DNA of 37,456 nt, taken from Bigelowiella natans CCMP2755. Lineage: Eukaryota; Protista; Cercozoa. A program made the position numbers and the translations under genes. The notes beneath the pieces were generated by a model. It saw nothing but the letters and a program-made list of their open reading frames with translations, did no database searches and was not told the DNA's origin. Below, one piece after another: positions 6,028 through 33,324 of the stretch. The stretch spans positions 1 to 37,456 of the forward strand of contig ADNK01003457.1 in NCBI GenBank assembly GCA_000320545.1, in the 5' to 3' direction. Each line of letters starts with the position of its first letter. The first letter of the stretch is position 1.

Positions 6028-6199
6028 ATATCATCATCATCGCCTCATAGAAAGAGCGAGAGAGCGATTAGTAATAATACATGTCCTTGTCTGACTTCAA
6101 ATGATCGGATTTCTATACGTGTATGCATTCACTCTTCTGTGTCTGCTGCTGTGTGCTTGTGGCGCGCATTCGCCATAAATGGAATTGCTACATTGCCAG

Positions 6200-6750
6200 T
6201 ATGGATGATGGGAATTCTACTTATATTTAACCTAGCATCGCATGGTAGCCGACCTATATTGCGAATCGAACGACAGTCGAGTACTAGTAGCTAGAGCGAT
6301 ACGCAAACAACGCACAGTGCGTGTGCTGCGCAGTGCCTGGTAGCCGTCGTAGCCACGACGCTGCATATACAGCTGGCACGTATACACCTCAGCTAGCTCA
6401 GGCTACAGCTAGCGTCCAGTATGTACAGAGAGCACTTCTCTCCTACGTGCACACATATCTAGATATGCACGGCCGTCGTCCCGCGCCACCTAGCTAGCTA
6501 GCCACATGCACACGTACATAATGCTTGTTTCTTTGGATTTGCACCATGTTCATCTTCATGGCTAGATGCTAGATATAGATGGGATCACGTATACGTGAGG
6601 ATGCGTGCATTTGATGCTAGCATCGCTAGATCGCATAGACAGTGCGCGCTACATGCAGGTGCAAGCCGCCACGTCTAGACGTACAGCACAGCTAGACAGC
6701 GTGTATTGTGATGTTCGCGTGATAACACACACACCACGTAAACGGATTAC
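6200..6750. other. Convergent intergenic spacer 1: CTAG/TGCA/CATG-rich domain with central GC core (6470-6487)
   Basis: Lies between stops at 6027 (+) and 7009 (-). Contains cctagctagctagcc, cagctagctcaggctacagctagc and gctagatgctagat; core cggccgtcgtcccgcgcc. Confidence 0.7.
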
Positions 6751-7008
6751 AGAATGACGGCACATGCAAATCACTTATACACTACCTATGTTGCCATGGA
6801 GCGCAGCACCACTACTACTGCTACTGCTACTACTACTACTACTAAGATCACGACTACTGCGTCTATTATCAGCAATAATATTGTAGAATACTCAATAATG
6901 AATAAATTAAATAACAAGGAGGCTAAAGAGTAGCTCCTGAGACAGCAGCAGCCATTCGTATACTATGATGTGCCCTACCGCATGGCTCTATCACTTCTGT
7001 AGCAGTAG

Positions 7009-7489
7009 TTACGTTGATGGTGATACCGCTGTTGTCACACGAAAAGACTTCCATACAGCTGGCTGTTGCTTAGCTGTATGGATGAATAAAATGTAGTTGT
7101 TATTGCATAATATCATCACATGAACTAAGCTCTCAGTAACCACAAAGTTGGAAACACTCGTCAAACACTGCAAATGCTGCAAAGCAACATGATGATAATA
7201 ATGACTGTATACACTACTACTACTCTACTACTTACTACTACTACCGAAATTGCCCCACTGGTCCAAATTTGTCCTAGCAACGAAACGAAAGAGCTTCCCC
7301 TTTCATCATCATCAGTTTATTGCATTGCATGCAGCAAAGATACGAATCATTATGATTGGAATACGGACAAAACTAAAAATTGATGATGCTGTGATCATTC
7401 ACCTCAGCAACTGTTGTAGAAACATATGCGAGGGTTTTGATGGGACATTGTCCTGTGTAATACACAGACACACACATACACACGCACGC

Positions 7490-7560
<71 letters not shown>

Positions 7561-8677
7561 AGTCTTATATTTGAATACTAAAAATAATTTCTGCATAGAT
7601 TGACATTGTTTGCTCAATGTGATAGTAGTATAAAATGATGATTGATGATTGTACAAACCCCAGGCGTACTAGTATAAAATGATGATTGATGATTTTACGA
7701 ACCCCAGGCGTACTTGGATTCTTCGTAGCTACACTTCCTAGAGAATAGGTTGTTTATAACAACAAAGAACGAATTGTTTCAATTTCTTCGATTGCAGCTC
7801 TCTTCACTCTTATCTCTCGCATCAATTAACATTAAAAATAAAAAAATACATGTATGTATTAGTTAATATCAATATCGATATATTATATTATTTTGCAAAT
7901 CCCTCCTTTCTATGAATGACGACACGCCTTTATATCGTCCTATTATTGTTCTTCTTCTTATTATTATTATTATTACTTTGGAGAGAAGGCAAGCTTATAA
8001 TCGTAGTATTTGACCCCATTTTCATCTAGCCGGATATCCACTCCCATCAAATCAGCCTGTTAATTATTGTTGCATCATCATCATCATCTTCTTCTTCTTC
8101 TTCATCATCATCCGTCATCAATTACGCTCATGTAAGGAGAAAACTACCTCGTTAACATACAAAATGCTGCATGATCTGTCACATTCCTACGACTACTAGT
8201 ACTACGACGTTCGTTCTGAACAATAGCATACTTACTTCTTTGAGCTCTGTATCATCCTTTGTAATCATCTGGATGTAGCGATCGCTCTCAGGGCGTCCAA
8301 AGTCGCTTACTGATGCTTCCTGTTAGATGGTGGAAGAATGAATTATGAATATGCATGTTGTTGGACAATGGTTCTTCTTCTTCTTCTTCTTCTTCTTCTT
8401 CTTCTTCTTCTTCTTGTAATAATCTAACATATTACACCGACAATGACTTACAGAAACAGGAAAAGAAGAGATCTCGATACGTGAGAACACCGCGTTGTCA
8501 CTGATAGGTTCCTGATTTATTCCATAATTATAGCATATCTGTACATATTGCTAAGGATGGGGCTGTTGATGCTGCTGGTGCCGATGAAATTGTGATGATG
8601 AGTGATGATTATTATCGTCATGAGATAATTGAAGATGAGGACGGTTATAGTACGTACTTCAGGCTAATACATACAAT

Positions 8678-8721
<44 letters not shown>

Positions 8722-9267
8722 TGTTATACTACTACAACAACTTACTTCTACTTCTACTCCTACTACTACTATTATCTAATTCTACTACCTTTAACAGAAT
8801 CCAATTCTTCATGCTACCTGAACAATTTACCATAACACAATAACAAAAACAACAGCAAAGTTAGTGATATTTAATATCGTAAAATGAAGCACAAAGCTAT
8901 TGGCAGAAAATATTTATCTATTTGTATAGAATGTATTCACTAATGCGACACCCGTATACTCTTCGATAGGGTATATCTTCTATAGCCCCCCTTTTCATCA
9001 CCCTATATTACTTACTATACTACTGTTTTCTACGATTACTACCACTACCTTCGTTGTTTACTTCTGTTTGTGTCATTTTCCAGACTCTGGGATACTCAAA
9101 TCGAGCCTGGATGTAGAAGCAGAAAAAAGTGTAAGTACCTGTCCTAGTCATCATTCTTCAATCTCACACTCGTGCTTCTCAAAATGACGAATAAATGCAA
9201 TTTGGAAAGGTATTAGATTATAATTATGAATATTTCACAATGGTGCCAAAGAAGCCGTAGTATATGA

Positions 9268-9307
<40 letters not shown>

Positions 9308-9537
9308 CGGCCTTAGAGCCTCCTCCTGGTGTGAATGTTTCCACTTCATTATCAGCTCCCTGCTCAGGGTCAAGATTATACTGATCCTAGGAGGAGGAGA
9401 AGGAGAAGAAGAAGGGTAACAAGAAGAAAAAGATGATAGAAGGAATGGTGTAGGGAACAAAGAAGTGAATGAGAGAAGGAGCAAAAGAGGATAGTGCAGG
9501 GGAAACGAGGAGTTGGAGGAGAAATATATACATATTG

Positions 9538-9587
<50 letters not shown>

Positions 9588-10216: not shown

Positions 10217-10225
10217 GTGGCAAGG

Positions 10226-10762: not shown

Positions 10763-10928
10763 GCAGCTAGATTAGAGCTTCTTCTTGGGACGCTGACGCT
10801 GAACATCGAATCCTGATCCTGTTAAAAGCTAACGGAGCCTTCCAGCTTTAATCAAAGACTGTCAAAATCTTGGACACTAGTGATCTTTAGCACAAAGTTC
10901 AGCTGACTTGATCAGGACAAATCGAATT

Positions 10929-12569
10929 ATGTTAATAGCTATTACCTCCCTCACGCTATTTATGATCTCCGTGCAAGCTCGTAGTACTACCGGCAATACT
11001 ACTTCTCGTCCAAACATCATCATTTTCCTCGCAGATGACGTTGGATGGAATAATGTACAGTGGCATAACCCGGATATTAAAACGCCTCACTCAATGAACT
11101 TGTTGAAGGAAGGTATCGAGCTGGATCGGCATTACGCATTCCTGTACTGCAGCCCCAGCCGATCAAGCCTAATGACAGGACGGCTACCCTTCCATGTCCA
11201 GCAATTTAATAGACCAAACTACGATTTGAATCAAGGAGCGCATAGAAACTTCACATTTATTTCGAGGAAGCTTAAGTCCGCCGGTTATCAAACTCATCAC
11301 CTAGGCAAATGGCACTTGGGTATGTCCTCCTGGGGCCATATACCAAAAGGACGAGGTTTTGACACAAGCCTGGCGTATTTTGAAGGTGGAGAGGATCCTG
11401 TATCTCAACGAACATGCGCTGACACGATGTGTTTCGTGCCTGTCAACTCATCAACAAAACCACCCAAGGAGATGAAAAAATTTAGTTCAATGCCTTTCGA
11501 CTTCTGGGAGGACACGCATCCAGCTCGAAGCAGAGTTGGTTCTGGTCAACATAGTGACTTCCTATTTAATGATATAGCGATTAAAACTGTGGAGGATCAC
11601 GACCCTTCCAAAGGGCCTATGTTTATGTACTACGCAGGCAGTAGTGCTCACACACCACTCGAGCCACCGCAACGTTTCTTGGATCTATATCCTGAGGACT
11701 GGTACCTGGACAGAAGGCAATATGCCGCCTTGTGTACGATGTGGGATGAGGTTTTGTTCAATCTTACCTCAGCTCTAAAATCAAAGGGAATGTGGGAGAA
11801 TACAATCCTGCTCTTTTCAAGTGATAATGGTGGTCCAGTATATTGGAGCTTAGACGATGATTTTCCTCACGGTGCAGGAGCAAATAACTGGCCATTGCTA
11901 GGAGGCAAAGTATCTAATTGGGAAGGAGGGGTACGGGTTGCTTCCTTCTTATCTGGAGGTTTAGTCCCTCAAAAGATGTATGGTAGAAAGCTGAGCGCTT
12001 ACATCCATTTTTGTGACTGGTATGCTACCTTTTGCTCGCTTGCTGGCGTTGATCCTGAGGATAAAGTTGCAGAGATGTTCAACTTGCCGCCGATAGACTC
12101 GATAAATCAATGGCCTATATTATCAGGAGAGACGAATGAACCTCTGCGAACAGAGATACCGATCTCTGTTGACGTACAGTTGGAGCTTAAGGGAGCAGGA
12201 AAGTTCCTGAATCCTAAATCAAGTGCGTTGATACAAGGAGATATGAAGTATCTGGAAGGCATCCAAGTTCAGACGTTCCATCAAGGCAACAATTTTCCTA
12301 ATTCGTCGCGTTATGGAATGCTTACGGATCCTTTGCTCTTTAAACGATGTCCTAAACCAAGGGGGGGTTGTTTGTTCAACATAACAGCAGATCCTTCAGA
12401 AGAAATAAATCTAGCCGAGAGCTTCCCAGAACTTTGTAAGAAAATGTCCGATCGCGTGAATGAACTCAGAAAAACCGCCTTCCAAACTAAATCTGACGCA
12501 TCACAAAGGCAAGAGTGTTACGCACAGATCAGGAAGAACAATAACTTTTTCGGACCATGGCTCTCTTAA
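10929..12569 (+). CDS. Arylsulfatase (formylglycine-dependent S1 sulfatase, ARSB/I/J-like), single exon, signal peptide, 546 aa
   Basis: PNIIIFLADDVG, CSPSRSSLMTG (CxPxR formylglycine motif), GYQTHHLGKWHLG, SSDNGG, NNWPLLGGK.SNWEGGVRV, LFNITADPSE. First ATG is at 10929 (the ORF track starts at an upstream TTG), followed by hydrophobic MLIAITSLTLFMISVQA. Confidence 0.93.
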   Translation: MLIAITSLTLFMISVQARSTTGNTTSRPNIIIFLADDVGWNNVQWHNPDIKTPHSMNLLKEGIELDRHYAFLYCSPSRSSLMTGRLPFHVQQFNRPNYDLNQGAHRNFTFISRKLKSAGYQTHHLGKWHLGMSSWGHIPKGRGFDTSLAYFEGGEDPVSQRTCADTMCFVPVNSSTKPPKEMKKFSSMPFDFWEDTHPARSRVGSGQHSDFLFNDIAIKTVEDHDPSKGPMFMYYAGSSAHTPLEPPQRFLDLYPEDWYLDRRQYAALCTMWDEVLFNLTSALKSKGMWENTILLFSSDNGGPVYWSLDDDFPHGAGANNWPLLGGKVSNWEGGVRVASFLSGGLVPQKMYGRKLSAYIHFCDWYATFCSLAGVDPEDKVAEMFNLPPIDSINQWPILSGETNEPLRTEIPISVDVQLELKGAGKFLNPKSSALIQGDMKYLEGIQVQTFHQGNNFPNSSRYGMLTDPLLFKRCPKPRGGCLFNITADPSEEINLAESFPELCKKMSDRVNELRKTAFQTKSDASQRQECYAQIRKNNNFFGPWLS

Positions 12570-12649
12570 AATGATAGAAATAGCAACAATTGTAGAAGTA
12601 GCTTATCGTTTTTATGCAGTAGGACGTATGGGTCGTGGATAGGGAGTGA

Positions 12650-13860
12650 TGGTCATGCCTAGTACGATACTAGCGTTATGTGGCGAGCTAGTGAAGCAGT
12701 GTATGCTTAAACATAGGGATAACTGCTGGGTGTAGATTAGCTTTCATCCAGCAATACTCACTGCAGCAGGCCAAATGAACGTTGATATTTCAATCATGTA
12801 ACGAATGCTTAGGCTTCGGCCTGTTCGTCGTTTAACGTACCGTATAGCAAGCGATTTTTGGCACGCGCGTGACGACACATGTAAGACGGATGTAATTAAT
12901 CAATGAAATTTGTTCAATAGCGACACACGTCTAGCGGCAATGCAATGCATGCTGAGTGCGCACTCATTGTACCTCACATGATCGATTCTAGGGGGAGACA
13001 GTACTTCATCTCATTGACGTTGCTGATAGCCACATGCAAGAGTCACATGCACCTTGAAGTTTTTGTGATGTGCGCGTTTCTAGGTTTGACCAGCGATAGG
13101 TTGTACGTGACGTAGGGTCGGCGTATAGGGGGGCTAGCTATGGCTAGCTAGGGGGGGGCAAGATCAGCTAGCTAGAGATGGGTGCACGTACGCACACTTG
13201 CATGAGTGCATTCAATGAGCATCGCAACGCAATGTGCTACGCAGTGTACCAGTGTAGCGTGCGCCAGGCGCTCTGCTAGCCATGTAGCGCTAGCAGGCGT
13301 GTCGCCCAACACATTCGTTCGATCGCCGCGCGGGCGGCCGCATGCAATGTTGTCATTATTTGCGCGCGATCGCGAGTCAACGCAGTCTAGCTACTGCTAG
13401 CTAGCTTGCTAGCTGGCTAGCTGGCATCATCGCAATTACGCTAGCACGCATAGGCGGCGACTAGCAGAGTCATTCGCACCCTGCATGCACAATGGATCAT
13501 CAAATGTGACGTCTACATACATGTGCTGCACGTGTCTGTTGTTCATTGTTGGCAGCAGTAAATGAATTCATCTGAACAAGAGGTGCATGTGTTTCATTCA
13601 ACAACAAGAAGGCAGAGAGTGTTGTGCATTATCAATAGTTGGCTGCGGCAGCACGCGCAATGCAACCGATGAGACTCTGGAGCGCCAGTGCAGGCTTTGA
13701 TGGGTTGCACAACGCGGTTTGTGAGTGTGTGTACGTGTGAGTGTCGTGTTTCTATTTGGCATGTGCAGCTGCCGCAATGGCGATTCATGCAAACGGGGTA
13801 AAATTGAATACAACGGAACGAGTCTAATCATTACTAGGTAACTGCAATGGCAAGGCACGA
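12650..13860. other. Convergent intergenic spacer 2: CTAG/TGCA/CATG-rich domain with central GC core (13324-13341)
   Basis: Lies between stops at 12569 (+) and 13905 (-). Contains ctagctactgctagctagcttgctagctggctagctggc and gggggctagctatggctagctagggg; core cgccgcgcgggcggccgc. Confidence 0.75.
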
Positions 13861-13904
13861 AAAATGGGAGCTAAGCTTATGAAAGCGGCATTTGCTTTTT
13901 AAGT

Positions 13905-15016
13905 TCATTCATCGTCATCATCGTCGTCATCACCATCATCGCCGCCAGCAGCTTCTTTCTCTTCTGCCTTTTCTGCCTTGCCCTTGTAGTTAGGCTTAAT
14001 TTCACCGTATCCAAGCTCTGCAAGCTGTGCATCAATATCCTTAAGCTCATCCTTGGTTGCGGAAACTGCTTCTTCCACGATTTTTGACATAGCCTTCTTC
14101 TTTTCGTAGAACGCAGCATTTCTTGCCATCCTTTTCGCCTCGAGCTTGTTAATAAGATCATTGTGTCTCCATCCTGCCAGGGTAGAAAGATCTCCCAATC
14201 TGCAGAACTTACGTCCAGGCTTCAGACGAAGGTTTTTGAGAGCTCTAGGAATGCACAACTTTTTCTTTCGGTTGAACTCTTCAGGACACCCTTCAAAAGT
14301 CTTCAGACGGGCAAGAGCAGACTTCCCCTTCGACTTCTTGTGAGCAATCATGCCCCTCACTACTCTCCAGAGAATTCGGGATGGAGCACGGTAGTGGAAA
14401 GGACCCTTCTTAGGATTCGTATTCATGCGCTTCTTCAGGAATGCGTAGTATTTCACTGCGTATTATCAAAATCAAGACGTTAAATTTACACGTCTACCAG
14501 GGGAACAAGCAAATTGCTACTGACGTTTGTTACGAAAGAGGGATCCAGAGATGTTGATCTCTTCGCATCTCACCACAACCTGAGAAATCAATCATTGTTT
14601 TATCAGTCAGTTGAATGTGGTAGAGAGATCAGCAGTATTCCTTTATTCCCCTAATCCTCGCTAAGTTTCAATTTACATTGTGCAGAAATATTTATTAAAA
14701 GTGATCATTCCCTTCCCTCTTATAATAAATACCAAAGTATGAGTGATGTATCTCATAATCTTCACGTTCACACTTAAATTTACTGTGTATTCTATGATAT
14801 CAACAATACTGTTTGACAACTTTTCTATCTAACGTAGAAAAAAATGCGTACGCACAATTTTCTGCCCAGCCTGGATTTCTTTGCAGATTGTCGAGGCCAG
14901 TCGGCCCAGGAGGTGTCCCTTTCCGTCAATGAGGACTTCCTGAAGATAATGTTTAACGCGTTAGTAAAAGAATGGTAGCATTTTCAATCTGAATTGTACA
15001 CCTTTTGGAACGGCAT
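13905..15016 (-). CDS. RPL13A: 60S ribosomal protein uL13 (L13a), 234 aa, 4 exons
   Basis: Exons 15016-15002, 14939-14856, 14579-14525, 14455-13905 give [87 protein letters not shown]..., the canonical eukaryotic L13a sequence. Confidence 0.97.
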
Positions 15017-16597: not shown

Positions 16598-16646
<49 letters not shown>

Positions 16647-17588: not shown

Positions 17589-17651
<63 letters not shown>

Positions 17652-17871
17652 AATACTGTATTACATGTGTTTTGCAATTAGCTTCAAATTTGCTTATTTC
17701 CTGCCTGCTATTGCGTGACTAATTTGTCATCACCATCAACATCATCATCATCATCATTATATTTAATATCCAGGTTCATATCTGGAACGTTATCAGCACT
17801 ATCAGTATGTTCGTGATAATTGAATTCTAATTATCTTGGCTGTAACAGTGATGATAATGATTGATAAACAT

Positions 17872-17902
<31 letters not shown>

Positions 17903-18602
17903 CAACTCACATAAATTCTGTCACTCTGAAAGATTCTCCTATTATATAAGTACCCCCCCCCCTCTTTTCCTGATCGAACGCCTTTTCCTTTCTTTCTCAA
18001 AAGCATTCATCACAAATGCTGCCTACAACTAATCCTTCTCCTCCTCCTCCTCCTCCTCCTTCGTCTGAAACGATGATATGGCCACACCAAGGCGATGATG
18101 CAGCTGGCATTGCCGCACATCAACGTCTTAAGCAAGTGTGATCTATTACCGGACAAGAAATCCACTTTGAACCGATTTTTTAATCCACCAATGGGGCAGC
18201 TGCTGCATGATCTTAATAAGGTAATAAAAAAGAAGAACAAGAAGAAGATAGATCATCATGGGATCCGTATTCTTCGTGGTATTTTAATGATGATGATGAT
18301 GACGACGACGATGTCGGAATGCCCAACCAAGTATTCTCTTTCATCCTGCTGATAAACCGTCTCAATACTCGCCAACAACGTTACTAACTACTACTTGTGA
18401 GCAGGATAGCATTGGAAAATTTCGAAAGTTGAACGAAGCTCTTAGTGACTTGATAACTAGTTACTCGTTGACGGCTTTTATTCCTCTTGACCTGACGGAA
18501 ACAGAGGTATGATCCTTCATCATACGGGTTAAATAAAACCACGTGTTGTTCAGTCGTATTCTCCATCTTATCGCTTGCTATGATGATACGACAATGTAAC
18601 GA

Positions 18603-18633
<31 letters not shown>

Positions 18634-19017: not shown

Positions 19018-19039
19018 GCTGTTTTCGTCTAAAAGTTAA

Positions 19040-19745
19040 CTGGTATGCGATGCTTCGAAGTAAAAGCATGCGCTTGCATTGTGCACAGCGCACCAAAGCT
19101 TTAGCGAACGCTAGAAGTCAGTCTAGCAGTACATCATCTATGCATCATCTAGATCTAGAGATCATGGCTCCGACTCAATACATGCATCGATCATCACTTG
19201 TGTATAGATGTTAGCTAGATTAGACAGGTCTAGAGGTGTCGTAGACGCACAGTGGCATACATGCATAGCTAGATAGCTCTAGAGCTATCCAGCTTGCTAC
19301 AAAGCAGACGCGGACGTGTGATCTAGTGATGCACATGCGCATCACACAGACAAGGCTAGCAAGCTGGCGAAAACGTTTGTCACGCACCTTATTATGCTTG
19401 GCACATCAACATTGTGCGCGCAGTAGCGCATCGCATGCCATCCAGCTAGCTAGCTAGCCAGCACAACGCATATGCGATTTCTCAGGTTCTGCACATGCAC
19501 ACACACTAGCATGGATGCCACGAATCATCATTCTAGCATTCGCTAGATTCGCCCGCGGGCGGCAGCTCTACAGCTCAAAGAGGCCTAGCTTCACACAGCT
19601 ATTACCACGCAAGATTCACGCTCAATTAATGGCACCACATTTTGTGTAACCTTATGTACAACCGGCCCCAAACACACAGCAAGAGCCAGATACTGCTCTG
19701 CTTCATACATGCATGCTAGCATCATAAAGACCCCATGCGACGTAA
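19040..19745. other. Convergent intergenic spacer 3: CTAG/TGCA/CATG-rich domain with central GC core (19550-19563)
   Basis: Lies between stops at 19017 (+) and 19948 (-). Contains tctagatctaga, gatagctctagagctatc and cagctagctagctagcc; core cgcccgcgggcggc. Confidence 0.75.
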
Positions 19746-19947: not shown

Positions 19948-22900
19948 TTAGACGAAATTCGTTGCTTTCAATGAGGAGTACTTTCCAGCCTCAACTTCCA
20001 GAGCTGGGTCGGACCTCGACATCGTAATAGTCTTGGTTCCAGGACGGCCAGTCTTATCAACCTTGACAGATACCGTACCATCCGCGGATGATGTCCTCAC
20101 CACAACTCCAACCTTCCACCTCAGATCGTACACGTCAACTTTCTGGTTCACGGCGAATTTTCTTTCCTCACGTTCATCTTCACTGTCGTAAGGCGTGTGG
20201 AGGCCGCCATCCAACGGCTCCTTATTCAAGAGCTTCTTCAGGGCAGACACCTTCTCTTTGACTGGGCGATAGTAGGGGACGTATTCGCACGTCAAGGTGT
20301 ACCTAAACACGACAACAAAAATTAAATAAATATTTTAAGAAAACAACACATTCGTACGTTATTATGATTATTATTATTACTATTTCTTTAATTTTTTTTA
20401 GTAAATAATTAATAAGCCTACCAACCTGCGGTACTTCTTGTGGAAACCAAGCTCTTCGCGCATAGCCTCATGAGATTTAAGTTTTCCTGCGAAGTATCTT
20501 TTCGCTAAATCTTTGGAGAAAGCAGTGACTTCATTATCCAGCCACTCGCGTAGGTGTTGCTTCGTTTGTGGACCGAGTTCTCCGCTTTCGTCGCTCTGAT
20601 ATTTTCGCAAACAAAATTTCACATAACAACAACAGAATCTTAAATGAGTACGAAGTATTACATTTGCTGTTTATTAGTTAGTAACCATCTTGGATGATCA
20701 TAAGTTGGTGAGAGTATTTATTTCATAAGAGCTGCTTTTTGAAAGAATGATGAATGCATGCGTCTCTATTACTACTACTACTCTCCTACTACTACTACTA
20801 CTACTACCATTACTACTTATTATCCATTACTACTTATTATTACCAAGTTGATGTTTTGCTTGTTGTTGTTTGTTGTGAGGGTCCTCTGCAAGCACTCTAT
20901 GGTTGCCTCATCCAGCTTCCCGGTGACAGGTAGGTTCCTGAAATGGACCCTCATGTGTTCTTGCAGTGCGGCCACAGTGACCGAGTCAAGTTGCCCTGTG
21001 ATCTCTGGCAGCTCGACTGTCGTACGCCTGAGGATGTACCGAAGATAGAACTGAAGTGCTTTGACAGTTTTTGGATGTAGTCCTTCTTGGTCAAGGTGCC
21101 AGTCGTACCCGCTCCGCCCACGACCATTGTACTCACGAAGAAGTGGGTGTAAGCGCTTTCGGATCGATTGGGCAGGTGCCCTTTCCCAAACATCGCCGTC
21201 GTGGTAGTTAATTTGGTAATAGCCATCTCCATGATCAACGGTGATTTCCCCTGGGTAGACACCGCTCTCAGTTTTGTACCTCGCAACAACTTGATCACCG
21301 ACACTCCACTCGACAGTAGTCTCTTTCTTCTCACCCACACCAAAGAAACCGATCAGACGCTCTACTGCTGCGCCGGCATTGTGCAGGAAATTCTGGCAGG
21401 CAGGCGAGAGCTTGGCCAGACGGAGTATTTGCTCCACCAGGAAATCGCCTTCTTTGAACTTGAGATCCTGCGTGAAGGCCAGGCAAAGCTTGCCAATAAT
21501 TTTTGGGGCGCGGTCGGACAAGTCTGGCGCCGACTTATCTGTAAGAAGAGCCGTTAGAACGCGATAGAATGGGCGCGTCAACTCGTGATGGCGATGCAAT
21601 ATGTCACGGTAAATATCTTCTAAGATATCATCCAAGATTTCCTTATCGGAATTGCAAATCTTGCAGATGAGAGTGGAAATGGGAGCTGCTCGAGCTTTTG
21701 TGTAACCTTCCATCAAGAGGCGATGGTAGAAAGCCGGTTTTTTCATTAAGTCTAGGTCATCATCCGTCTTGCACAACATCACTAGAAGGGAGAAGTATTC
21801 ATCGGGGAGATGGTCGATTCGAAAATCTGCGTTGTTTCTCTCCTGATTTGGCCCCACAAGTGCCACCAGAGCTTCAATTAGTTGGTAGTGGACAAGCAGC
21901 CTTTCCATCTCTGGCCCCATTGCCGCAAATTTGTAGAGTAGTCGGATCCAGTGGTAGTTGCTGGGACACCCAACCACTCTCAACTCGTATTCTAGGCGAG
22001 CAATAATGGTGAAAAGGTAACCTTCATTAGGCCTTGGCACTATCTCCTTGATCTTATTAGCTACGGATGACGCACTTCCAGAATCGGCCTTACTGTCTGT
22101 CTTCTCATCCTTTCCATCGTCTCCCTTTTTGGCCTCTTGGTCCATACCACCAAGACGATTAGGTGTGTTGGAGCGAACTGCACGCCTTTTTGCAGGTGCG
22201 GTACACGCCTTAGCGATAGCTCGCCTCTCGCCAGCTGCCAACGTTCGCATGGCTTCAGCGAGGAGGTCCACAGCTCCTTGTCTGACCTCTTGCACCGGGT
22301 ACGTTACTTGTGCCGTTTCGTACTCGGCCATGAGAATATTGAGGAACCAGTCTACCTTAGGATTAATGAACATGCTCAGGAGCCAGACAGAGGAAGCGAC
22401 GTTGCCAACGTAGAGAGCCTTGACTTCACGCACCCACCCAGCCCATCCTCGCCCTACTTTGTGAGCAGACCGAGCGAGGGTCATAAGTAGATACCGGGTC
22501 GCCAGGCGAGTGATTTGGTCGTAGAGGTTTGATGGGGTATTCGAGACGTCTTCTACCTTAGGCTGCTGCTCTGGTGCCTTTGGGTGAGCTTCCTTGAAGG
22601 CACGGATGATATCACGGAGAGCAACGCCGTAATGACGGTCGTGAGCCATCGACCCTCGCCATTTCTCCTCGTTTTCTTCCCAGATCTTGCGAAGCATTCC
22701 CTGGGGCACAATTGCTTTGGCCTTTGCTCTCTCCGCAGCCTCTGCCTTCTTTTTCTGCAGCTTCTGAACCAATTTTCCAGCCTGTGCAAATTTGAGCTTA
22801 CTTAATCCCAAAGATACGGGCTTCTGGACGACTTCTTTAGGCTGCTCTACTTTGTCGTAAAACAGAACGTACGCTGTGGAGCACTTCCAGCTGTCATTGT

Positions 22901-25900
22901 CCGCTGAACCAAAGGTTTCCTCCTCTAACTTGTTCACATCGAAAGCGGAGATCATTGAGTCGTTGAAGCAGTACCACTTGTCATTCGGTGGGCGCTCACG
23001 AATGTAAGAGTAGTAGTGGCCAGATTGCAATGTTCGGCCAGAATGAACGATGACACCCATGAGCTCATATTGATAATACTCATCAGGATGCTTGGATGGT
23101 GGAGTGATTTTGGCATCAGCCTTGCTCGATTCGGCTTCACCTGTATCAGTACCCCTTGGAAGCTTTCCATTTAGGACCTCTGCCGAGTATGGCTTCATGT
23201 TGAGCTTCTTTGGGAAGGAAATGCGGTGATTCAATTTGAGCGTATTGCCCATATTGTCGTAACCCATACGGTTGAGGCAAATCATAAGGCACTGAGGCAT
23301 CGTTTTGAAGACCGTGCGCTTGAATACCTTGACGTTCTTTTTTTCGTACTTTTGGCCAAAAACACCTTCCTTGGAGACCTTGCGCTGCTGCTGTTTGAAT
23401 TCTACATGAGATTTGAGGCATTCGTGCAGTGTCTTATGTCCATTGACATTCAAGGAAATAGGCCCAGTCCAATTATCGATGCTATATTCATAGTTCAGGT
23501 AAGGTGCTGCACGGGAACCGACGATTTGGTCAACGAACTTGAGACCACACACCGTCTTAACCGAGTCCTCGTAGGGACCTTTCTTCACACGGTCCTCTAG
23601 GCGCCCCAGCAGAATTTGCAGAAAGCCATTTGAATCAGCTTGCTCGTGCCCAGCTGCACCTTCCCCACGGACAGGGCGACCTGCATTTTCCCAATCAGGA
23701 TCCTCAAAGCTCTCGTGGAACTTCATTGGGCGAATTGCGCGCTTAGTAGATTCTTGAAGGTGTCCAAGGAGCCACTGCAACCCCTGCAGTTCATCGCGTT
23801 TCCACTGTGGGCGCGAAGGATTTGGATGCTGATAGTTTGTAATAGCTAGGATGTTTTCCCGCAACTTCGGCTGCATAAAGATCTGCTGCAGCGCTGCATT
23901 AATGTAACAAGTGTTTCCACAGTTAATGAGTCCACAATATCCTTCGCGTTCGTCGGAATCTTTAATCCAACCAGCCTCATATTCCCAGTTATCACGTCTC
24001 TTGTTATAAATTCTAAGGTGCTGTGGAACCAGAAGTGCAGCCAAAGTCTTAAGATTATCATCATTCCCGCTTGTCAATGCGGAGAGAAGTCTGAAAGCAG
24101 CTTCACGTGTCACATTGTGTTTGCACATTGGTGGTCGAATCTTGAGATGATACGAGTTTTCTAAGGTGGGGACTTTGAAGAGCATGTCAAATACGGGGGT
24201 GAGAAGCTCAAGTTTTCCACCAACACCCATCTCTTTTCGCAGGTCTGGAACTTTCTTAACCAATTCCGCGGTAAGATTGAGAAGAGCACCAAGTACTGCG
24301 TCCTGAGACTTTGGAGTAGTCTCTGTCATCGGGTGCTTCTTGATGAGGTTAGCAAGAGACCCGCCGATCATTGTTGCCGATTTCTCCTCAATTTCGTTGG
24401 TGTTTGCGATCAAGTTGCGCATAAGAAGAAGATACTGGGCGCAGTTGTTCTGCGTGTTAAGTTCCGAAAACCTTGCATGCACAACTTCCAACAGCTTGTC
24501 TCGCATCTGTTCACGCAATTTGGATACTTGCTCACTATCTTCTGAACAGCTTTTGCTGAGTTGATCAACTCCATCTGTGAAGGCCTTCTGAAGCATAACA
24601 TTTTTGTTGACAATGAGCGCGGCAGGGACCAGCTTCTCCCACTCGGGGCCGAAAGCCTTGATTTGCGCAAACACGGATGGTTGCACTTTTACCGCCGTAG
24701 TCAGGAGCCAGAAAATCGAGCTGAGAGCTTGAGAAGTATCGACCACAGTAGCCTCATCTGTTTTGACGAGGTTTGGGATCATATGAAGTGACACATCCAC
24801 GATAGAATCCAAAGGAAGAACTTTCAGTACAACCTCCCTGCTAACAACAATTCCCATAGTAAAAAATGCGAAGATTTTTTGCATCATCGACAGGCATCTC
24901 AAAGCTAGCTTATCGGCTACAAGAAGTGCAGAGGATTCCTTCAGCACCGATGCAAGTCGTGGCAAACCACCAGAAACAAAGGTCTTGCACCATTCGTCAT
25001 TATTTAATGGACTCTTCTTGTCTGTTCCTCGCTTAGCGGGGTCGATAATTTGGAGGGTGTACAGGAGTTTGACAGGGCGAGAAGGAAGAATTTCAGCCCA
25101 ATCGACTTTCCCCGCTTTGTGGATTCCACATAGTCTTACAGCAACAGTATCGCTCGCGGGAAGGTGTTCGAGGGTATCCCAAGCTAAGCCGCCAACAACT
25201 CCACCAACATCCAAAAATGAGAATATCAGGTTGAAGTATGTCTTTTCCCCAGCAAATGTATTTTTCAAGTGCTTCTCCACACCGCTAAGCTCCACTTTCT
25301 GCGGCTTACGGCGTTCCTTATTCTTGTCTCGCAGATAATCCTCCTTAGCTGCCTTGTCAACATCACCATCATCGTAGTGAACCCAGTAGGTCCCGTCTTC
25401 ATTGACCCCCTTAATTTCTGCTCCGTAGAGAGTACCCCCATCGCGCTTCCAGTGAGCATAGATTTTCTCGCCCTTTTTATAGAGAGGGCGCTTGATCATC
25501 TCTCCTTGGTCAATTCGAGTGAGGACATTTAACATTAGCTCGAGGGTTGCTTGCATGAGTGCCACGTCCTTTTCCTTCTTTGCTTCGTTCAAGCATTTGA
25601 TACAATTCTCAACAAACTCATCAAGGGCTGCCAACTTGGATTTCTCATCCATTTCCATGGTAGCAAATTTGATGTACATTGAGCCGAGAAACTTTTGCGA
25701 GTTTGCGCGGACAGTGGAATCGGATTCGCGTAGAGAGAAATCCCATAATTGGTCCATTCCTTCGAGCTCACTGTGTTTCATGACTGTAAGGGGAGCTTCT
25801 TCCAAAGCTCCTTTCTCCCTATTTGAGCTCAAAAAACAAGCTGTAAAACACCCTTGCCATTCGGGGGTGACCTTAATCTCCTCCTTTGTCTTCTTATGGA

Positions 25901-28661
25901 TATACTTCGAAGCTAGCTTCGTGAAAAGATGCTTCCGAGATTTCGGAGAGAAGACTGGATATCCGTCCTTCTTTTCCTTTAGGCAGTCGGTGAGCCATTT
26001 CATAAAGTACAGAGTGTCGAATTCACAAACACGGTTGGATGTGTAGAGGTCCCAGATGTCATCGATTTCGGCCGATTCAAGAGTGCGGTTGGGCGAATGA
26101 ACGCAGATGAATTGAATAAACCTTAATCTTGCTAATACTTGTTTTTTGTGAGTTGAAACGCCTGAAAGAGCCCTCAGTTCAGGTGATTTCTCTCCGTCTT
26201 TCTTTTCAGTTAGGCCCTTCCATGCAGCTGCGTTGTAGTTCTTACTGTTTTTGAAGAATAAGTTAAGCAGGTCAAAGTTCTCAACATTTTCGTCAATCTT
26301 TTGAGAAGTCTCTTTGTAGTCAGCACCCCTCATAAGGATTTGGAAGATCGTGAGAGCATTGACCTCTCCAGAGCCGTTGGTCAAACTCTTTACGCACATT
26401 TGCGCGTATTCGTCACGTTTGGACGCGAACATTTCATTTTCAAAGAGATGATTCAGGCACTTCGTTGCCTTTTGAAGTATACTCTTCTCAATCTTAGATT
26501 CATTCTCCGGTGCGAGCATGTCCCAGAGAAGGTTGAGTCCGTACCAATGGGTGCCTTTGGTGGCCTACACACATACACACAAAATATGTAAATATATATA
26601 TAACACAAAATATGTAATTATATATATTATACATTATAATGAAGATATTCCGTGTGTAAACCAGGGAAATAATGTTCGTTACCTTAACTGCACTCAGCGT
26701 AAATTTAGTAAGAGCTTCCAGCTGCCATGACGTGAACTCGCTGAACTCGATTCCTTCAGTTTGTCTTTTGTACATCATCGTCAGGGTCTTTTCATCCATT
26801 TGCTCAGCAAGCTGCGACATGAGTGCAGAGCCTTCCTCAGTTTTAGCTTGGGCCAGTAGAATATCAAGGTGAGCAGTCGAGAGTTGTTTGTTCTTAGCAA
26901 GGAACTTAAATATTGGAGATGAGACCAAGAAAAGACGTGGATCGTTTGAAATGACATCCACGACTTTGTTCTTTTCAATCCATTGGATAAACCTCTCAGT
27001 ATTTAGAAATCTCAATGTTGGAGGTTCCTCTTCAACCTCGTTAGGATACGAGTACTCATCCTTTAGTGCCTTGATACAGTGGGCCTGGAGGTAATCCTGT
27101 GTGTCTCCAGATCCGTCAGTAAAATGAACATTATAGGTTCCGTCTGAATTAATAGACGTGATCTCTGCTGGGTAGAAACTACCATTTTTGAATTGAGCTA
27201 GGACTCGTTCCCTTATTTCCCATTTCAAAGGCGTTAGAGCCTTAATGTAAAGATTGATGAGAGACATGCCCCGACGTTGTGCTACGATCTTGTCAGACCC
27301 AATGAAGAATAGAATTAAATCTAACTGTGCCGTCTCCCCAAATTCGTCTGCAGCACCCCTATGTAGCCCAGCCCCGCGGAGAATGCTGCAAAGCTGCTCG
27401 ACAAAATTATCAAAGAAACGTTTCTCTTTCCCAGCGATAGCGTAAATCTGATTTCTATCCAAGGAACCTAACACGCCTCCGAGAAAATTGCTATCATCAA
27501 CATGTAAGCTCTCGAAGTACTTCTGCATAAAGTTTTCGTTCAGCGAATATTTTCTCCATCGCAAAGTTGCAATCATTCTATTCGTTGTTTCGAATAGGGG
27601 TCCCTTTTGTGCCTTGCCTTTACGTCCTTCAACGAAGTCTTCAGTAGTCAGGGCTAAACGCTGGCGAAGAGCATCAAATCCTCCGGCCTCCCCAAATTTG
27701 TTAAGAAGGTAAATGGTGGCAAAGAGATCCTCTGGAGGTCCCTCACCTTCAATATTCCGTGTGACGCTAGAGAATCTGCCCTCAACTTGCTTCTGCATGC
27801 CACCAAGGACGTCGTTGATATTCCGGAAGTACATCATCTGCGGGCTTTCTATGCTTCTGTTGTTCGCCGGAAATATATATTCGATGCCTTTCATAGCTTC
27901 CTTCTCTTGTTCCTATGAGAATACACGAGGTGATATATCAGATGAGTTCAAATTGAGAAAATATTTGGGGTGAAAATTACCCTAGTTACATTCCCCGATT
28001 TTAAAGCAGCAACCAAAGTTTCAAGCCATGCAGTCAAGAAAGTGAGGGGATATTTCCAATTTTCCTCATTAATAATTGCTTGCAGCATATTGGGAAGGTA
28101 GTTTCCTTTGCAGAGCCATGTCATTTGTCCCTCCTTCAACTCAGTCCCATCATGGAGAGCTTTTCTTACTGTATCTAAGGTATCCTTTTCCTTTTTATAC
28201 TCCTCTATGTCGAGTTCATATCCAATGGGCTTGTTTCGACCTTCGCCCGTGTAATCTCCTTTCTCAACCATAGTCCACAAAGGAGTAATTTTTTTGGCTC
28301 CTAGGCGCATGTATACCCACTCATCGTACTGGCTGTCCCAACCTTCGTAATGAATCCTGACACGATCCTCCTCCTCGTCGACTTGTATAACTTTAGCAGT
28401 TCGCCATTTATTTTTATCGAGGACATCGCACCGTGTTCCCACGGGGTAGTCTGCGATTTTTGCTGGTTCCTGATGGAAAGTAGCGAAAATATTAATTCTG
28501 GTAAGTACAATGATATTTTCCTTTAGGGACACTATTTTCTTCTTCAATAGAATTCTGAAACAAACATTCCAACCCTAAGTCTATTCGAAGGGTTTAGATC
28601 GAAATATTTGTATGAAAAGAATGAAATCTCGGAAGGGAAGGGAATATTAAGAAATCACCAT
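19948..28661 (-). CDS. Large ubiquitin-specific protease (peptidase C19, USP9/24/34-like), ~2652 aa, 6 coding exons, with Tudor/Agenet-like and PG-binding-like modules
   Basis: Exons 28661-28659 (ATG only), 28469-27990, 27912-26683, 26564-20844, 20595-20426, 20302-19948, all GT-AG and in phase (7959 nt). Cys box GYCGLINCGNTCYINAALQQIF, His box YELMGVIVHSGRTLQSGHYYSYI, WYCFNDS, AYVLFY. The helical scaffold (LNKFGEAGGF, PPMCKHNVTREAAFRLL) is typical of USP9/24/34. Confidence 0.92.
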
Positions 28662-29845
28662 CTTGTGGCCGAACGCGTTCACTCAAATTGCTCAATTCTA
28701 TTATTTGGAAGAAGTTGAGGCTTAATTTTCCTGGAAGACACAATACAACTATTAGAAGATGCGAACGCTCATCCAAATAGCTGTCGCATGAATATTGAAA
28801 ATTCCCTTATACAAAATGGTAATATATTGCAAGGGAAGTGGGGGGGGAGCACCTGTATGCGCTCGACTATTCGATTTCAGATTTTAATATCCGAAGTAAA
28901 TCAATAAATTCGTATTTTCTACTTATTTAGTATAAAGCGACAATTGATTTTACTATTGTTTCACCTTTTACTTAGGAAATCCACACTATAGATTCATAGT
29001 CCAGGAGATGAAACTTCCCGATATTTAGGGGAAGCTACAGAGAATCTTCTCCGCACTTTTAACTTCGATAAAAAATTCAAAAGAACGTAGCAAATCCTAT
29101 TGCGACAAGTCTTTCCATTTAAATTTTAGCGCAGATAGACAGTTCACAATGGATTAAATTGTCGGCTAATCACACTAATCGAAATCCATCAAAATCTGAA
29201 AATCCTAAGGCAAAATCCCATACAAAAAAGACAAGCGATGCTGGACTGGATGATGTAGTCGGAGAAGGAAGGCATGCGTCATGAAATCCTAGAAGGCGTT
29301 CAACATAAAACGTGCCTCCAATAGAGTCCAGGCTACCGGCAGTACCGGTAGTTAGACTAAAACAGTCTGAAACTCACAAAGCTCGTTTTTCGGATAAGAA
29401 TCCCCTCTATTTGAATCTGTATCAAAACTTACGATCTATTCAGAATTTCGGTCGCCCAATCCATTTCGAATGTTAACCGTCCTATGAAATATATTGCGTA
29501 AAAATGGAAGTCGCTGGTAATAAAACGAATTAAATTGCAATTTTCTCCAACAATGACTACGCGTGATACGTCTTGATTAGCTTTGTATCAGTTACAGAAA
29601 AAAGTACATGTGCCTTCCCCCCCCCCCGTGCGCATTCTTCGAACTAAAATCAGGAGTGTAATTTATGACTTATGTGAGTACGCAATTCGAATTATCTTGA
29701 AAATACTTTACCAAGTAGATCTAGAAGTACATTTCGATGATTTTTTAAATCTACTGCACCGCCACACACATGTACCCGGGTGCTTCGAAGTACTTGTGGA
29801 GTGAGGTCAGAACTCAACCACTATCTTCCTACTCAGTTTTGTCGC
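28662..29845. promoter_or_regulatory. Divergent (head-to-head) intergenic region, putative bidirectional promoter and 5' UTRs
   Basis: Between predicted ATGs at 28661 (-) and 29846 (+); A/T-tract rich, lacks both microsatellites and the CTAG-rich signature. Confidence 0.5.
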
Positions 29846-29944
29846 ATGCCGCTGCCAACCATCAATGATCGAAATCGAAACTCTCGGCAATTGGTAATCC
29901 AATCCCAACTTGGATATTACATTTTTTGAGAAAAGTGCATGCTC

Positions 29945-29989
<45 letters not shown>

Positions 29990-29996
29990 AATGTAT

Positions 29997-30043
<47 letters not shown>

Positions 30044-31178
30044 ATCATATAAACACACATTGTGTGTAAATGGTTTTGCATCTACCTGTCCGCGGTCATT
30101 GTTTGTGTATATAATTCCAAAAAAATCCAAACATCAGAAATCTCAAAAACGACGACAAGCATCTGCGAATATGTGGGAGGCGAAACTTCCAACAATAAAA
30201 GCACGAGGACTGAAAAGTTTTAATGTAATGGAGCCCGACAGCTCAGCTCAGGTTTGTTAATATAGGTGGTGAATTGTCTCATATTAGCAAGTCTGATTAT
30301 GCTCTCTCTCTCTCTCTTTCTCTCTTTGTGCTTTCTCCAAATGGCTTATCTGAGCAGGAATGTCTCAAATGGACTGACACTATCCGCAAGGTTGGTATCA
30401 TATAGTGTCAATACCACTCTAGCAATGACTTATATTTTATTATTTCTTAGCCCGAGGAGTACGAATCGAGAAAGAAGCGAACCAACATACCCAAGCACCT
30501 AAACTACAAGAAATTCAACTTCCTTGACGACGAAGGCGATGCAATAGTACGGATTATTTCGTGTATATAGTATCAATTATTTATATACTCTTGATCTCCT
30601 CAATATAGATAGATGGAAAGTTTCTCAATTTTGAAATAATACCCTTCAGAAATGCTTGGAATGGGATGACGAAAAGTCCGACACCGATACGAACGTCCCA
30701 ACACCAGGGAACTCGAAATTTCAAAAATTCATGGCGAAGAAGAGGGGGGATAGGGATTCGGTAAACAATCAAAAAAAATATTCTTGTTGTTCTTCTCACA
30801 TCAATCAACGTATGGTTATCGTCCTCAATTCACTCTAGGTCGATGAAGCTCAACGACTAGCGAAGTTCATGAAGGAGCATTGTTCCTCTACATCAAATTA
30901 CAAACATCTCGAGAAGACGAGATCCAAGCTCTTTGGTTCGGTAGACCAACTTAACAGATATACTCGCAAGAACGATGACGATTTCCAGAACTTCTACCAA
31001 GATGGCTTGGCGGACCCTTTGTACACCAATCCAGAAAATCACATCTGCGTAATGATGATTGATTAGCAGGAGGGATACAATATTATGCGAGGAGGGGGGA
31101 GATTTTTTTATTTATTCTATCACAATATTACATACACATGCTCACTGTATATTGCAAATTTACACACGCACACACATA

Positions 31179-31219
<41 letters not shown>

Positions 31220-31493
31220 TTAATGTTTGTTAGTCCGTGTGTTATTATACCGTTGAATATGTTCGATTTTGTAGGTTGTAAACAAGAACTTCAAGAACGC
31301 TCTAGCAGTTGAGACACGCTTAAAACGCGCATTCAGGAGTGCTGGACTAGGAAAAGCGTAAGTTTCCATACTCCAAAATCATTGACACATAGTAACCAGA
31401 AGATGTTCTTTCATCAGACCAAAGATCCCCAAATCCAAGAACGGAATGAGTCGAATTGATAGAAATCTAGCTGCTGCAGCTAAGAGGAGATAG
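29846..31493 (+). CDS. Hypothetical basic/hydrophilic protein, 256 aa, 8 exons
   Basis: Exons 29846-29893, 30138-30251, 30358-30390, 30451-30546, 30650-30760, 30839-31048, 31275-31357, 31418-31493; all GT-AG with an open frame throughout (771 nt): MPLPTINDRNRNSRQLKSQKRRQ...GLADPLYTNPENHIC...RNLAAAAKRR*. No family recognised. Confidence 0.75.
29948..30038. repeat. Compound (TA)n-(TG)n microsatellite, intronic
   Basis: Visible runs in intron 1 of the hypothetical gene. Confidence 0.95.
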
Positions 31494-31599
31494 TGCTACC
31501 TTGAAAGAATAATGCGCTTCGCAAGTAGATATGTAAGCAGTAAGCTCTCACATTTCGCACACACATCTTTCATTTGTTTTCCAAACTGAAAATGAGTGG

Positions 31600-32840
31600 A
31601 AGTGCTCACACACATAGCACCAGCACATGCTAGCACGGTTGAGTCTTCTCGTTCGAATCATTACTTACACCCATGCGCCTCACCATTGTCACTATAGAAA
31701 CAATAAATAGCAACGTCGTTTGTCTGGAGCCCTGTCTCTTGTGTACATCTACTTAGTACACATGTATCGTAGAACATGACGTATACCATCGCATCTTCTA
31801 TACATAGGCGCGTTCTCTAGTTATAGTAGCTGACAGCGCAGCAATACATGCTACAACTTACGGGCCCTTACACACACATGCTGCTCTATGCTGATATGCA
31901 CTGCTACATGTAGATTGCTCACGCACAACACATCTGCTAGTAGTAGAGCAATGACTAGCTAGCACAGCACAAAGAGCACAGGCAAGCTTAACGATGTTCG
32001 CTGCTGGCATGCGAACACACAACAAATGTTTACCAATGTGACACCAACTACACACACAGCATGGCGCAGTGCCGTCAATTATGAGAGACTCAAGCTAGCT
32101 TGCAAAGCAGGTACGGTAGAACGTAACAGTACTATTGTCAGTGCTATATATAGCTGGCTGTTTTGTCGAATAAGCGGCCGGCGCGCCCTAGCACAGTGCA
32201 TCGCAACACATTCACACGACTCAAGCGTTACGTTTGCTAGTCTAGATCGTCGTATAGACCGTGCAGCAATGCCCACCGACTGGTCGAAATCGAAAATGAG
32301 CATGTACTGCACACACCTAGACACGCACACAGGCACACTGCAACAATGATGGACAACGTATTATTACTTGCTGTATCCATTGCTTGCACATCACTATGTC
32401 ATGCATGATGCTGCTGCGCGGCAGCCACATGACCAGTATGCATACACATCGCATGGAACTCATGTCTACTACTTGCAGACCGAAGGCTGGCATGGTATCG
32501 TAGTTCCTTTGTTGCAGACGGTGACATGACTAGATGTATAGATGAAGCCCAATGCACGTGCACTAGCGTAGCATGATTATTATGCACATGCCACGCGCGC
32601 AGAAGTCGAATTGGGAACAACGTATCGTACTACAGCTAGGAGCATCAAATTCTATCCCCAGTCTTCCCGATTTTTGGAATGAGACTATGGCTTCGCACGC
32701 GTACAGGCATGTAGCTAGATAGCGCATCCCTTACGCAGCATTCCTTAATGACAAGCATTTGCTATCTAGCTGTATTAGCTGCTCGCTGTCCGTGCGCCAA
32801 TCGACATGAAGGTACGATTATCACTTTTAGTAGCGCGACA
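31600..32840. other. Convergent intergenic spacer 4: CTAG/TGCA/CATG-rich domain with central GC core (32174-32188)
   Basis: Lies between the stop at 31493 (+) and the 3' end of the PPR gene (-). Contains gactagctagcac, aagctagctt, gctagtctagat and gtagctagatagc; core gcggccggcgcgccc. Confidence 0.72.
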
Positions 32841-33324
32841 AAAACAATATTTCACATTTGTATAATCACCTTATCAATCATACATTAATTAAAAATGCTG
32901 CTTTACATCATTCTCCTACTATCATCTCTATGCATTGAACGAGTTGTAACAAGGGGGAATCAATTTAGCTAGTGACACGAGCAGAACAGCAATATTTCAA
33001 AAGAGTAATGAGTTATCCGCAATCGTTGTGCAGGTACATATCGGTTGTTTCCACGTTATCATTTCATCGTCCGTTAATCATCATAAAATCTGCTTATTCA
33101 TTCAATCACCATCCTTCAGCAGCTGCTCGCAAATGGGGTCCTACATTAAAAAATAGACGAGGGCAAGCAATGGAGTCACAAATGGACATTTCAAGTTGAC
33201 CGATAAAAGGCGTCGAGGCAGTAAAGAAGGATGGATTGGTCCATTATTCCCAAATCTCACATCCACACCATCCTCATCATATCACCTCTCAAAATTAGAA
33301 AACTACATGAAAATGTGCGACAAG

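Follow-up and report, generated by a model that had tools for sequence, protein, structure and literature searches.

A recurrent 8-bp CTAG insertion in gene spacers of Bigelowiella natans: a candidate transposon footprint in patchily edited, purine-pyrimidine-alternating DNA

Excision of Tc1/mariner transposons (Tc1, Minos, Sleeping Beauty) keeps both target duplications together with a few terminal element bases, and excision of piggyBac is seamless, the overhang being the duplicated TTAA with nothing left behind. The bacterial insertion sequences IS630, IS5 and IS481 employ DDE transposases and combine a symmetric CWWG-type target preference with short duplications. Topoisomerase-II-dependent duplications of 2-4 bp, known from yeast and from cancer genomes, are plain tandem duplications with no fixed insert. 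The mark described here, referred to as the CTAG scar, is an 8-bp insertion that consists of CTAG plus a copy of the adjoining four letters (NNNN-CTAG-NNNN). It was found in four gene spacers within a 37,456-nt stretch of the cercozoan Bigelowiella natans CCMP2755 (contig ADNK01003457.1, positions 1 to 37,456, assembly GCA_000320545.1), which in its full length is called the window, and its distribution was followed through the whole 91-Mb assembly.

For B. natans, Mettrop et al. (2026, bioRxiv 10.64898/2026.01.13.699255) have described that integrated viral DNA undergoes TpA-to-CpA/TpG hypermutation and that transposase genes are TA-poor. That work is silent on CTAG, on scars, on convergent spacers and on purine-pyrimidine alternation. 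CA/TG hypermutation is thus the published part of what follows; in the literature searched, neither a CTAG-plus-4 footprint nor a transposon combining a 4-bp duplication with a preference for CATG was found described.

A sequence-only reading of the window had singled out four tail-to-tail spacers as CTAG-rich, almost free of microsatellites and alternating in purines and pyrimidines, and had taken this for a shared composition and not for a dispersed repeat. Both statements hold. The four blocks, A (6200-6750), B (12650-13860), C (19040-19745) and D (31600-32840), together 3,709 nt, were compared with the remaining 33,747 nt of the window. CTAG occurs 69 times in the blocks (18.6/kb; 15, 21, 18 and 15 times in A to D) and 59 times in the rest (1.75/kb), while GCTAGC reaches 6.2/kb against 0.15/kb (41-fold) and TAGCTA 3.8/kb against 0.21/kb (18-fold). 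TGCA, CATG, GCGC and ACGT each stand at 2-4 times the window mean. A/T tracts of at least 5 are four times rarer in the blocks (0.81/kb versus 3.23/kb), and microsatellites of at least 12 nt number 0 in the blocks versus 97 elsewhere. Alternation amounts to 0.61-0.65 per block (A 0.65, B 0.61, D 0.63), compared to about 0.49. A sliding scan with a width of 300 nt recovers the same four blocks, and the only windows with three CTAGs outside them are block edges and one at 4801, with an alternation of 0.44 and without a scar. The blocks give no alignment with each other. In a search of the assembly A, C and D proved to be single-copy, and block B has one partial paralogue.

These copy numbers bear on the proposal that the blocks are worn copies from a single family of transposons or satellites, or else unannotated exons or RNA genes. 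Block B does contain a stump of a LINE-like (long interspersed nuclear element-like) repeat besides its partial paralogue, but no counterpart of A, C or D was found elsewhere in the genome, the blocks are mutually unmatched, and no Rfam family, tRNA or Pfam domain was found within the four blocks. The proposal is therefore already largely refuted and is regarded as extremely improbable. The LINE-like stump itself is about 46 bp long (12875-12921, minus strand), with one sharp end and the other variably cut. The repeat starts with ATGTAAGACGG on the plus strand of the window and its copies are about 40-90 bp long. It has 171 candidate places in the genome, of which the 40 that were scored are about 80-98% identical (most 91-98%); in an alignment of 9 copies, one carries a target duplication of about 10 bp.

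The self-complementary vocabulary of the blocks has three separable sources, namely the 8-bp insertion, TpA editing and purine-pyrimidine alternation. Of these, the insertion is the most sharply defined. Identical 4-mers flank 16 of the 128 CTAGs in the window, with about 0.5 expected, and CTAG ranks first as a centre among the 256 tetramers once microsatellite words are set aside. All 16 of these exact scars lie within the blocks, and none is found among the 59 CTAGs outside. In the blocks, flank pairs at Hamming distance 0 and 1 number 16 and 12, versus 1.1 and 4.7 expected; outside, the corresponding counts among the 59 CTAGs are 0 and 2. Only a spacing of 4 with a CTAG centre stands out. 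The duplication is exactly 4 bp, given that five-base repeats around CTAG number 8 versus 38 four-base ones and six-base repeats are not among the top counts.

Block A holds five exact scars and one nested scar: ATAT-CTAG-ATAT (6455-6466), ATCG-CTAG-ATCG (6622-6633), ACGT-CTAG-ACGT (6671-6682), ACAG-CTAG-ACAG (6688-6699) and, at 6486-6505, a CTAG-CTAG-CTAG scar within a CCAC-CTAG-CCAC scar. Nesting of this kind is exposed when scars are collapsed iteratively. Block C, with eight exact scars and one nested, contains CAGT-CTAG-CAGT (19119-19130), AGAT-CTAG-AGAT (19151-19162), AGGT-CTAG-AGGT (19226-19237), TGAT-CTAG-TGAT (19319-19330) and CATT-CTAG-CATT (19529-19540). It also contains two overlapping scars, ATAG-CTAG-ATAG and AGCT-CTAG-AGCT (19265-19286), and, again exposed by collapse, a CTAG-CTAG-CTAG scar within CCAG-CTAG-CCAG (19442-19461). 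Block B has two exact and three one-mismatch scars, among them GTTT-CTAG-GTTT (13076-13087) and a chain of overlapping scars with CTAG, CTTG and CTGG targets that forms an array of 8-bp period (13397-13424). Fewer scars are recognisable in block D (one exact, five with one mismatch), where the exact one is ACAC-CTAG-ACAC (32313-32324). In block B two runs of 6-8 G flank a short CTAG array at 13128-13158.

Taken together, these counts make it very probable that scars cause the CTAG excess of the spacers. The signature had been ascribed, among other things, to a DNA-modification target or a binding array; its most specific word, CTAG, is traced instead to a stereotyped 8-bp insertion. The broader idea of a mutational footprint was right for much of the signature, although what had been seen as a single composition consists of three layers.

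The mark is an insertion, because paralogous transposon copies show sites empty of it. Among three Harbinger-like copies that are 90-93% identical, three scars were found, each in one copy with the site empty in the other two. Their targets are AAGT, CAAT and CAGG, the last of which reads TAGG in the other copies. The GTTT scar of block B is common to the paralogue on contig C3479 and is therefore older than that duplication. The paralogy itself covers 515 bp (12643-13160 of the window and C3479:1-516) at 90% identity, and the two copies differ by 20 transitions and 28 transversions, a transition/transversion ratio of 0.71. In the pairs of transposon copies this ratio is 15-24 in two of three and 3.6 in the third. 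The C3479 copy lies at a contig end, and the transversion-rich divergence could be real or an assembly-end artefact; it is given no weight here.

Genome-wide, exact counts of X-CTAG-X were made for six words X, with the same words around GATC as controls. The most frequent of them by far is CATG (3,828 sites), followed by AGCT (569) and ACGT (309), all three beginning with A or C and ending in G or T. Words of the opposite class (G/T first, A/C last) are much rarer, with 134 sites for TGCA, 16 for TCGA and 11 for GTAC, and the GATC-centred controls give 3-9 sites each. The target thus follows a symmetric rule, 5'-(A/C)NN(G/T)-3' or M..K, and CATG is some 350 times as frequent as GTAC. In 42 pooled scars the first target position is A or C in 86% and the fourth G or T in 95%, and G or C is favoured just outside the target word. 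Of the genomic CATGCTAG 8-mers, no fewer than 77% run on into CATG. The flanks of 20 listed CATG scars are unrelated, and these are therefore independent events. GCTAGC occurs 44,612 times in the genome; when the window is extrapolated by length or by GCTAGC count, the genome would hold roughly 25,000-40,000 exact scars. Since GCTAGC obeys the M..K rule, a scar generates a new good target, which accounts for the CTAG arrays and for the G-CTAG-C context of 59% of those spacer CTAGs that are not recognisable as scars.

The second layer is TpA editing. Mettrop et al. (2026, bioRxiv 10.64898/2026.01.13.699255) define hypermutated regions by rho TA of at most 0.43 and rho CA+TG of at least 1.52. 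Transposon loci clearly pass these thresholds, and the Harbinger-like copies are almost TA-free (rho TA 0.01-0.3). Of the 300-nt intervals scanned here, only 13501-13800, in block B, passes both, with rho TA 0.41 and CA+TG 1.90. Over the pooled spacers TA is not depleted, since its rho stands at 1.11 and still at about 0.83 once CTAG is left out; CA is at 1.56 and TG at 1.31. The signature reported for hypermutated DNA is thus present in transposon copies, in spacer sub-blocks and in scars, whereas the four spacers as a whole differ from hypermutated viral DNA in not being TA-depleted. The scars themselves are edited. Genome-wide, ACGT-CCAG-ACGT occurs 46 times and ACGT-CTGG-ACGT 45 times, while other transition products, the TTAG and CTAA versions, stand at background level with 13 and 9, so that about 23% of ACGT-type scars carry a TpA edit. 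One TA-free locus has no CTAG at all and six scars centred on CCAG or CTGG. These edited scars rule out that CTAG is immune to editing. Of the TAs surviving in TA-free DNA, 11 of 16 lie inside a CTAG without target duplication, and T[A]G is the rarest class in the published mutation contexts, with about 23 of about 236 context entries by approximate word counts over the whole table (bioRxiv 10.64898/2026.01.13.699255). CTAG is the slowest editing context and outlives other TAs. These data show that TpA hypermutation acts patchily on the blocks and also on scars, and that scarring and editing alternated in time.

A consequence of editing for gene prediction was seen alongside. TA-free DNA lacks TAA and TAG stops and displays long open frames on both strands (e.g. 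545 and 631 codons; L030:1501-7001, L002, L003 and L013), which are likely to be false genes. One open reading frame (ORF) in such a setting matches Pfam PF16684, the catalytic domain of telomere resolvases (ResT/TelK), with E 1e-10 and a score above the cut-off. It lies at L030:1066-2379, equivalent to about 15565-16878 of contig C2072, on the minus strand, and adjoins a weak DDE_3-like frame; the DNA around it is almost TA-free and presumably foreign.

Scar insertion, TpA editing and alternation in spacers of silent DNA, with a transposon footprint as the agent of the scars, form the combined explanation that we consider probable. That a cut-and-paste transposon made the scars is, taken by itself, a view to which we incline moderately. 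Such an element would carry CT..AG (or CTAG..CTAG) ends and cut its target with a 4-bp stagger, and its excision would leave bases of the element at either flank. As CTAG is self-complementary, flank ends could pair and be ligated without processing, giving an invariant footprint. An element of low copy number that moves without replication would leave many footprints and few or no remaining copies. Every insertion adds one CTAG, doubles a target word, in many cases a palindromic one (CATG, AGCT, ACGT), and yields (G/T)CTAG(A/C); as GCTAGC is a good target in its turn, scars become nested and extend into CTAG arrays. A target duplication around a short fixed insert, a fixed length of 4 bp and an insertion relative to an empty site, as expected of a footprint, are all observed here.

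Other routes to such a mark were considered and set aside. A hairpin (P-nucleotide) footprint of the hAT/RAG type would produce an insert that varies with the target, whereas CTAG is constant for every word. Plain fill-in of a staggered break gives no CTAG, and snap-back synthesis would yield inverted instead of direct copies. IS481EU and related families make 4-bp duplications but have TGT..ACA ends.

Several observations count against the combined explanation. Recognisable scars are only about 35% of the spacer CTAGs, and the remainder would be scars that have decayed or grown into arrays. The alternation falls outside the account given by scars and editing and could mean selection on the blocks. 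No pair of terminal inverted repeats with target duplication and CTAG ends was found in about 100 kb scanned, and 100 CATGCTAG half-sites show no recurrent continuation. The search for transposases covered the piggyBac, DDE_3 and DDE_Tnp_4 superfamilies. The Pfam piggyBac model has no match in the assembly, a blank that it shares with 14 control genomes (none of them known carriers) and that does not show absence, and the DDE_3 search gave only one weak TA-edited relic. A Harbinger-type family with DDE_Tnp_4 is present and abundant, but its ends read GGCATTG and not CTAG, which speaks against it as the scar source. Finally, over 3,132 generations of mutation accumulation no scar arose among the 21 new indels (bioRxiv 10.64898/2026.01.13.699255), although this list says little, as by a rough inference few or no events are expected in so short a run.

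The candidate DDE_3 frame of 545 codons was rejected as an intact gene, as it sits in TA-free DNA where only TGA stops are left. The Harbinger-type family (L008/L027, L009/L028 and L015/L029) has inverted ends of at least 50 bp that start with GGCATTGCAC and is heavily TA-edited. Among the indels of the mutation-accumulation lines, about 14 are new insertions, of which 7 end in ACA (e.g. TGACA, CCAACA, TACACA), and the same list contains a multi-base change of TGGC to AACA (bioRxiv 10.64898/2026.01.13.699255). This ACA-ending insertion signature is distinct from the CTAG scar.

The missing element gives room to a different agent, a host or viral enzyme that cuts M..K sites, foremost CATG, in silent DNA with a 4-bp stagger and seals them with a fixed CTAG as a repair or defence mark. 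Tens of thousands of scars for which neither a resident element nor a matching transposase was found would suit such an enzyme, as would the strong sequence rule with its 350-fold excess of CATG over GTAC, the confinement of scars to the same silent DNA that is targeted by hypermutation, and the interleaving of scarring and editing in time. However, repair is not known to add a fixed tetranucleotide by any route, and fill-in of 4-nt overhangs, as in topoisomerase-II-dependent duplication, would leave just the four target bases in tandem, with no CTAG. Moreover, target duplication with retained end bases is textbook cut-and-paste, with which a low copy number is compatible. An enzymatic origin is accordingly judged rather unlikely. 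Much the same doubt applies to its extension, in which an undescribed enzyme system would form a second arm of defence or chromatin marking beside TpA editing, with alternation as its substrate or its product.

Where the scars fall is informative irrespective of the agent. No scar lies in the roughly 20 kb that introns, small exons and divergent spacers make up within the window, in line with the original observation that divergent spacers and introns lack the signature. Scar density is 4.9/kb in the blocks and about 0.3/kb in transposon DNA. As an 8-bp insertion into an intron should mostly be harmless, this exclusion suggests that silent DNA, or else this type of sequence, is targeted, and that selection alone is not the reason. 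The spacers would then act as a passive sink that collects marks, a role that we find slightly easier to accept than that of a functional domain.

The third layer, alternation, counts in favour of a functional domain. The share of steps that switch between purine and pyrimidine is 0.45-0.46 in coding sequence and about 0.5 in the remaining non-coding DNA, and TA-edited transposon DNA has 0.48-0.56, all lower than the values of the blocks given above. In the blocks, all steps from purine to pyrimidine or back are raised (GC 1.68, CA 1.56, TG 1.31, AT 1.20), and homo-class steps are lowered (CC 0.44, GG 0.59, AA 0.61) except AG and CT. Relative to a first-order Markov expectation, CTAG is 4.0-fold in excess and CATG, ACGT and AGCT are 1.5-1.8-fold, the latter fitting a doubling of favoured targets. 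TGCA, GCGC and CGCG stand at 0.9-1.1, because nearest-neighbour steps alone predict their counts. TGCA and GCGC, which had been listed among the special words of the spacers, are thus fully explained by dinucleotide content. For scars at other loci, 20 of them listed at random, the flanks have an alternation of 0.62 and the dinucleotide profile of the blocks. The four spacers are therefore one distinct sequence class, as had been supposed, and belong to one genome-wide DNA type of B. natans that lies behind gene 3' ends and is mostly single-copy.

Two sources of the alternation were rejected. TpA editing fails as the source since transitions keep the purine or pyrimidine class, and edited transposons do not alternate. 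A decayed (TA)n/(CA)n microsatellite is equally unsuitable: the autocorrelation is that of a first-order chain with nothing past lag 4, and the frequency of CG steps comes close to that expected under independence. Alternating runs of at least 12 nt, of interest for Z-DNA, number 16 versus 7.7 expected; the longest is 18 nt, and the runs are short and mixed. Left-handed Z-DNA relieves negative, not positive, supercoiling, so that the absorption of positive supercoils suggested earlier for a YR-step region, if it ran through Z-DNA, would conflict with established physics. The alternation may stem from selection on DNA mechanics, from two-way termination signals or from a transversion bias.

The second of these sources corresponds to the terminator or boundary class of element by which the sequence-only reading had explained the spacers. 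The blocks would be domains of two-way transcription termination or boundary formation, with scars and editing as passengers. Selection would maintain the alternation and words like CATG and TGCA, perhaps as flexible DNA or as arrays of factor sites or poly(A) signals that can be read from either strand. The alternation speaks for it in being a sharp block property that recurs around scars elsewhere, that neither TpA editing nor scars can create, and that, as a nearest-neighbour effect without phase memory, is not a decayed microsatellite. All four blocks also start roughly 0-200 nt past a stop codon, as judged from ORFs for B and C and from the stops given in the sequence-only reading for A and D. 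But the blocks share no motif or alignable core, three of them are unique sequence, and in the manner of unconstrained DNA they accommodate 8-bp insertions by the dozen as well as a LINE stump and patches of hypermutation, while TGCA and GCGC are no commoner than dinucleotide content predicts. A functional domain of this kind, and the terminator or boundary function as part of it, is hence unlikely, though it keeps some weight.

The genes around the blocks are convergent where they could be assigned. Block B is flanked on the left by a sulfatase ORF on the plus strand (10908-12569; Pfam PF00884, E 2.6e-37) and on the right by a ribosomal protein L13 ORF on the minus strand (13905-14456; Pfam PF00572) with its stop at 13905-13907. 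To the left of block C lies a plus-strand exon of a GPN-loop GTPase (ATP_bind_1, 18095-18352; Pfam PF03029, E 1.9e-4, which is under the curated cut-off). To its right lies a large USP/Tudor gene on the minus strand (19948-28553), as indicated by minus-strand ORFs, Tudor domains and a coding-score scan. Both convergent pairs agree with the earlier assignment. For block A, a PsbP-like neighbour had been named, and a genome search with the Pfam PsbP model gave no match on this contig. Pfam searches of the small ORFs near A and D returned nothing usable, and a scan of codon usage was too weak for short exons. The junctions in the window alternate between convergent and divergent without any head-to-tail (tandem) gene pair. 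Because no tandem pair is present, a position between convergent genes and a position behind a 3' end are inseparable in the window.

One and the same 8-bp mark, set tens of thousands of times under a strict symmetric target rule and only in presumably silent DNA, documents a single DNA transaction with unusual clarity. If the transposon reading is true, each scar stands for a landing and a departure, tens of thousands in all, and target choice, chromatin preference and age could be read from them; if there is no transposon, they are the product of a new break-and-seal process. Editing of scars, seen in about 23% of the ACGT type and in all scars of some loci, provides a relative clock for a newly described defence system. 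For annotation, the long false ORFs of DNA without TAA and TAG stops call for caution, and signatures that resemble palindrome-rich terminators can be by-products of target duplication.

Compared with the systems introduced at the outset, the scar of B. natans combines familiar features in a different arrangement. With topoisomerase-II-dependent duplications it shares the 4-bp stagger, the dyad-symmetric preference and an expected link to convergent genes, but it differs from them in its fixed CTAG insert. IS630, IS5 and IS481 use CTAG as a pre-existing target, whereas in B. natans CTAG is the insert, placed at CATG or at some other M..K word. The footprints of Tc1/mariner elements are similar in being marks of fixed form that arise from a duplication plus retained bases. 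However, their duplication is TA only and their footprints are somewhat variable, as opposed to a variable 4-bp M..K duplication with constant CTAG here, and an element has been found for none of the tens of thousands of marks in B. natans. As in piggyBac, the target duplication measures 4 bp and self-complementary 4-nt overhangs would be ligated without processing; unlike in piggyBac, the element would contribute the self-complementary CTAG, which would stay behind.

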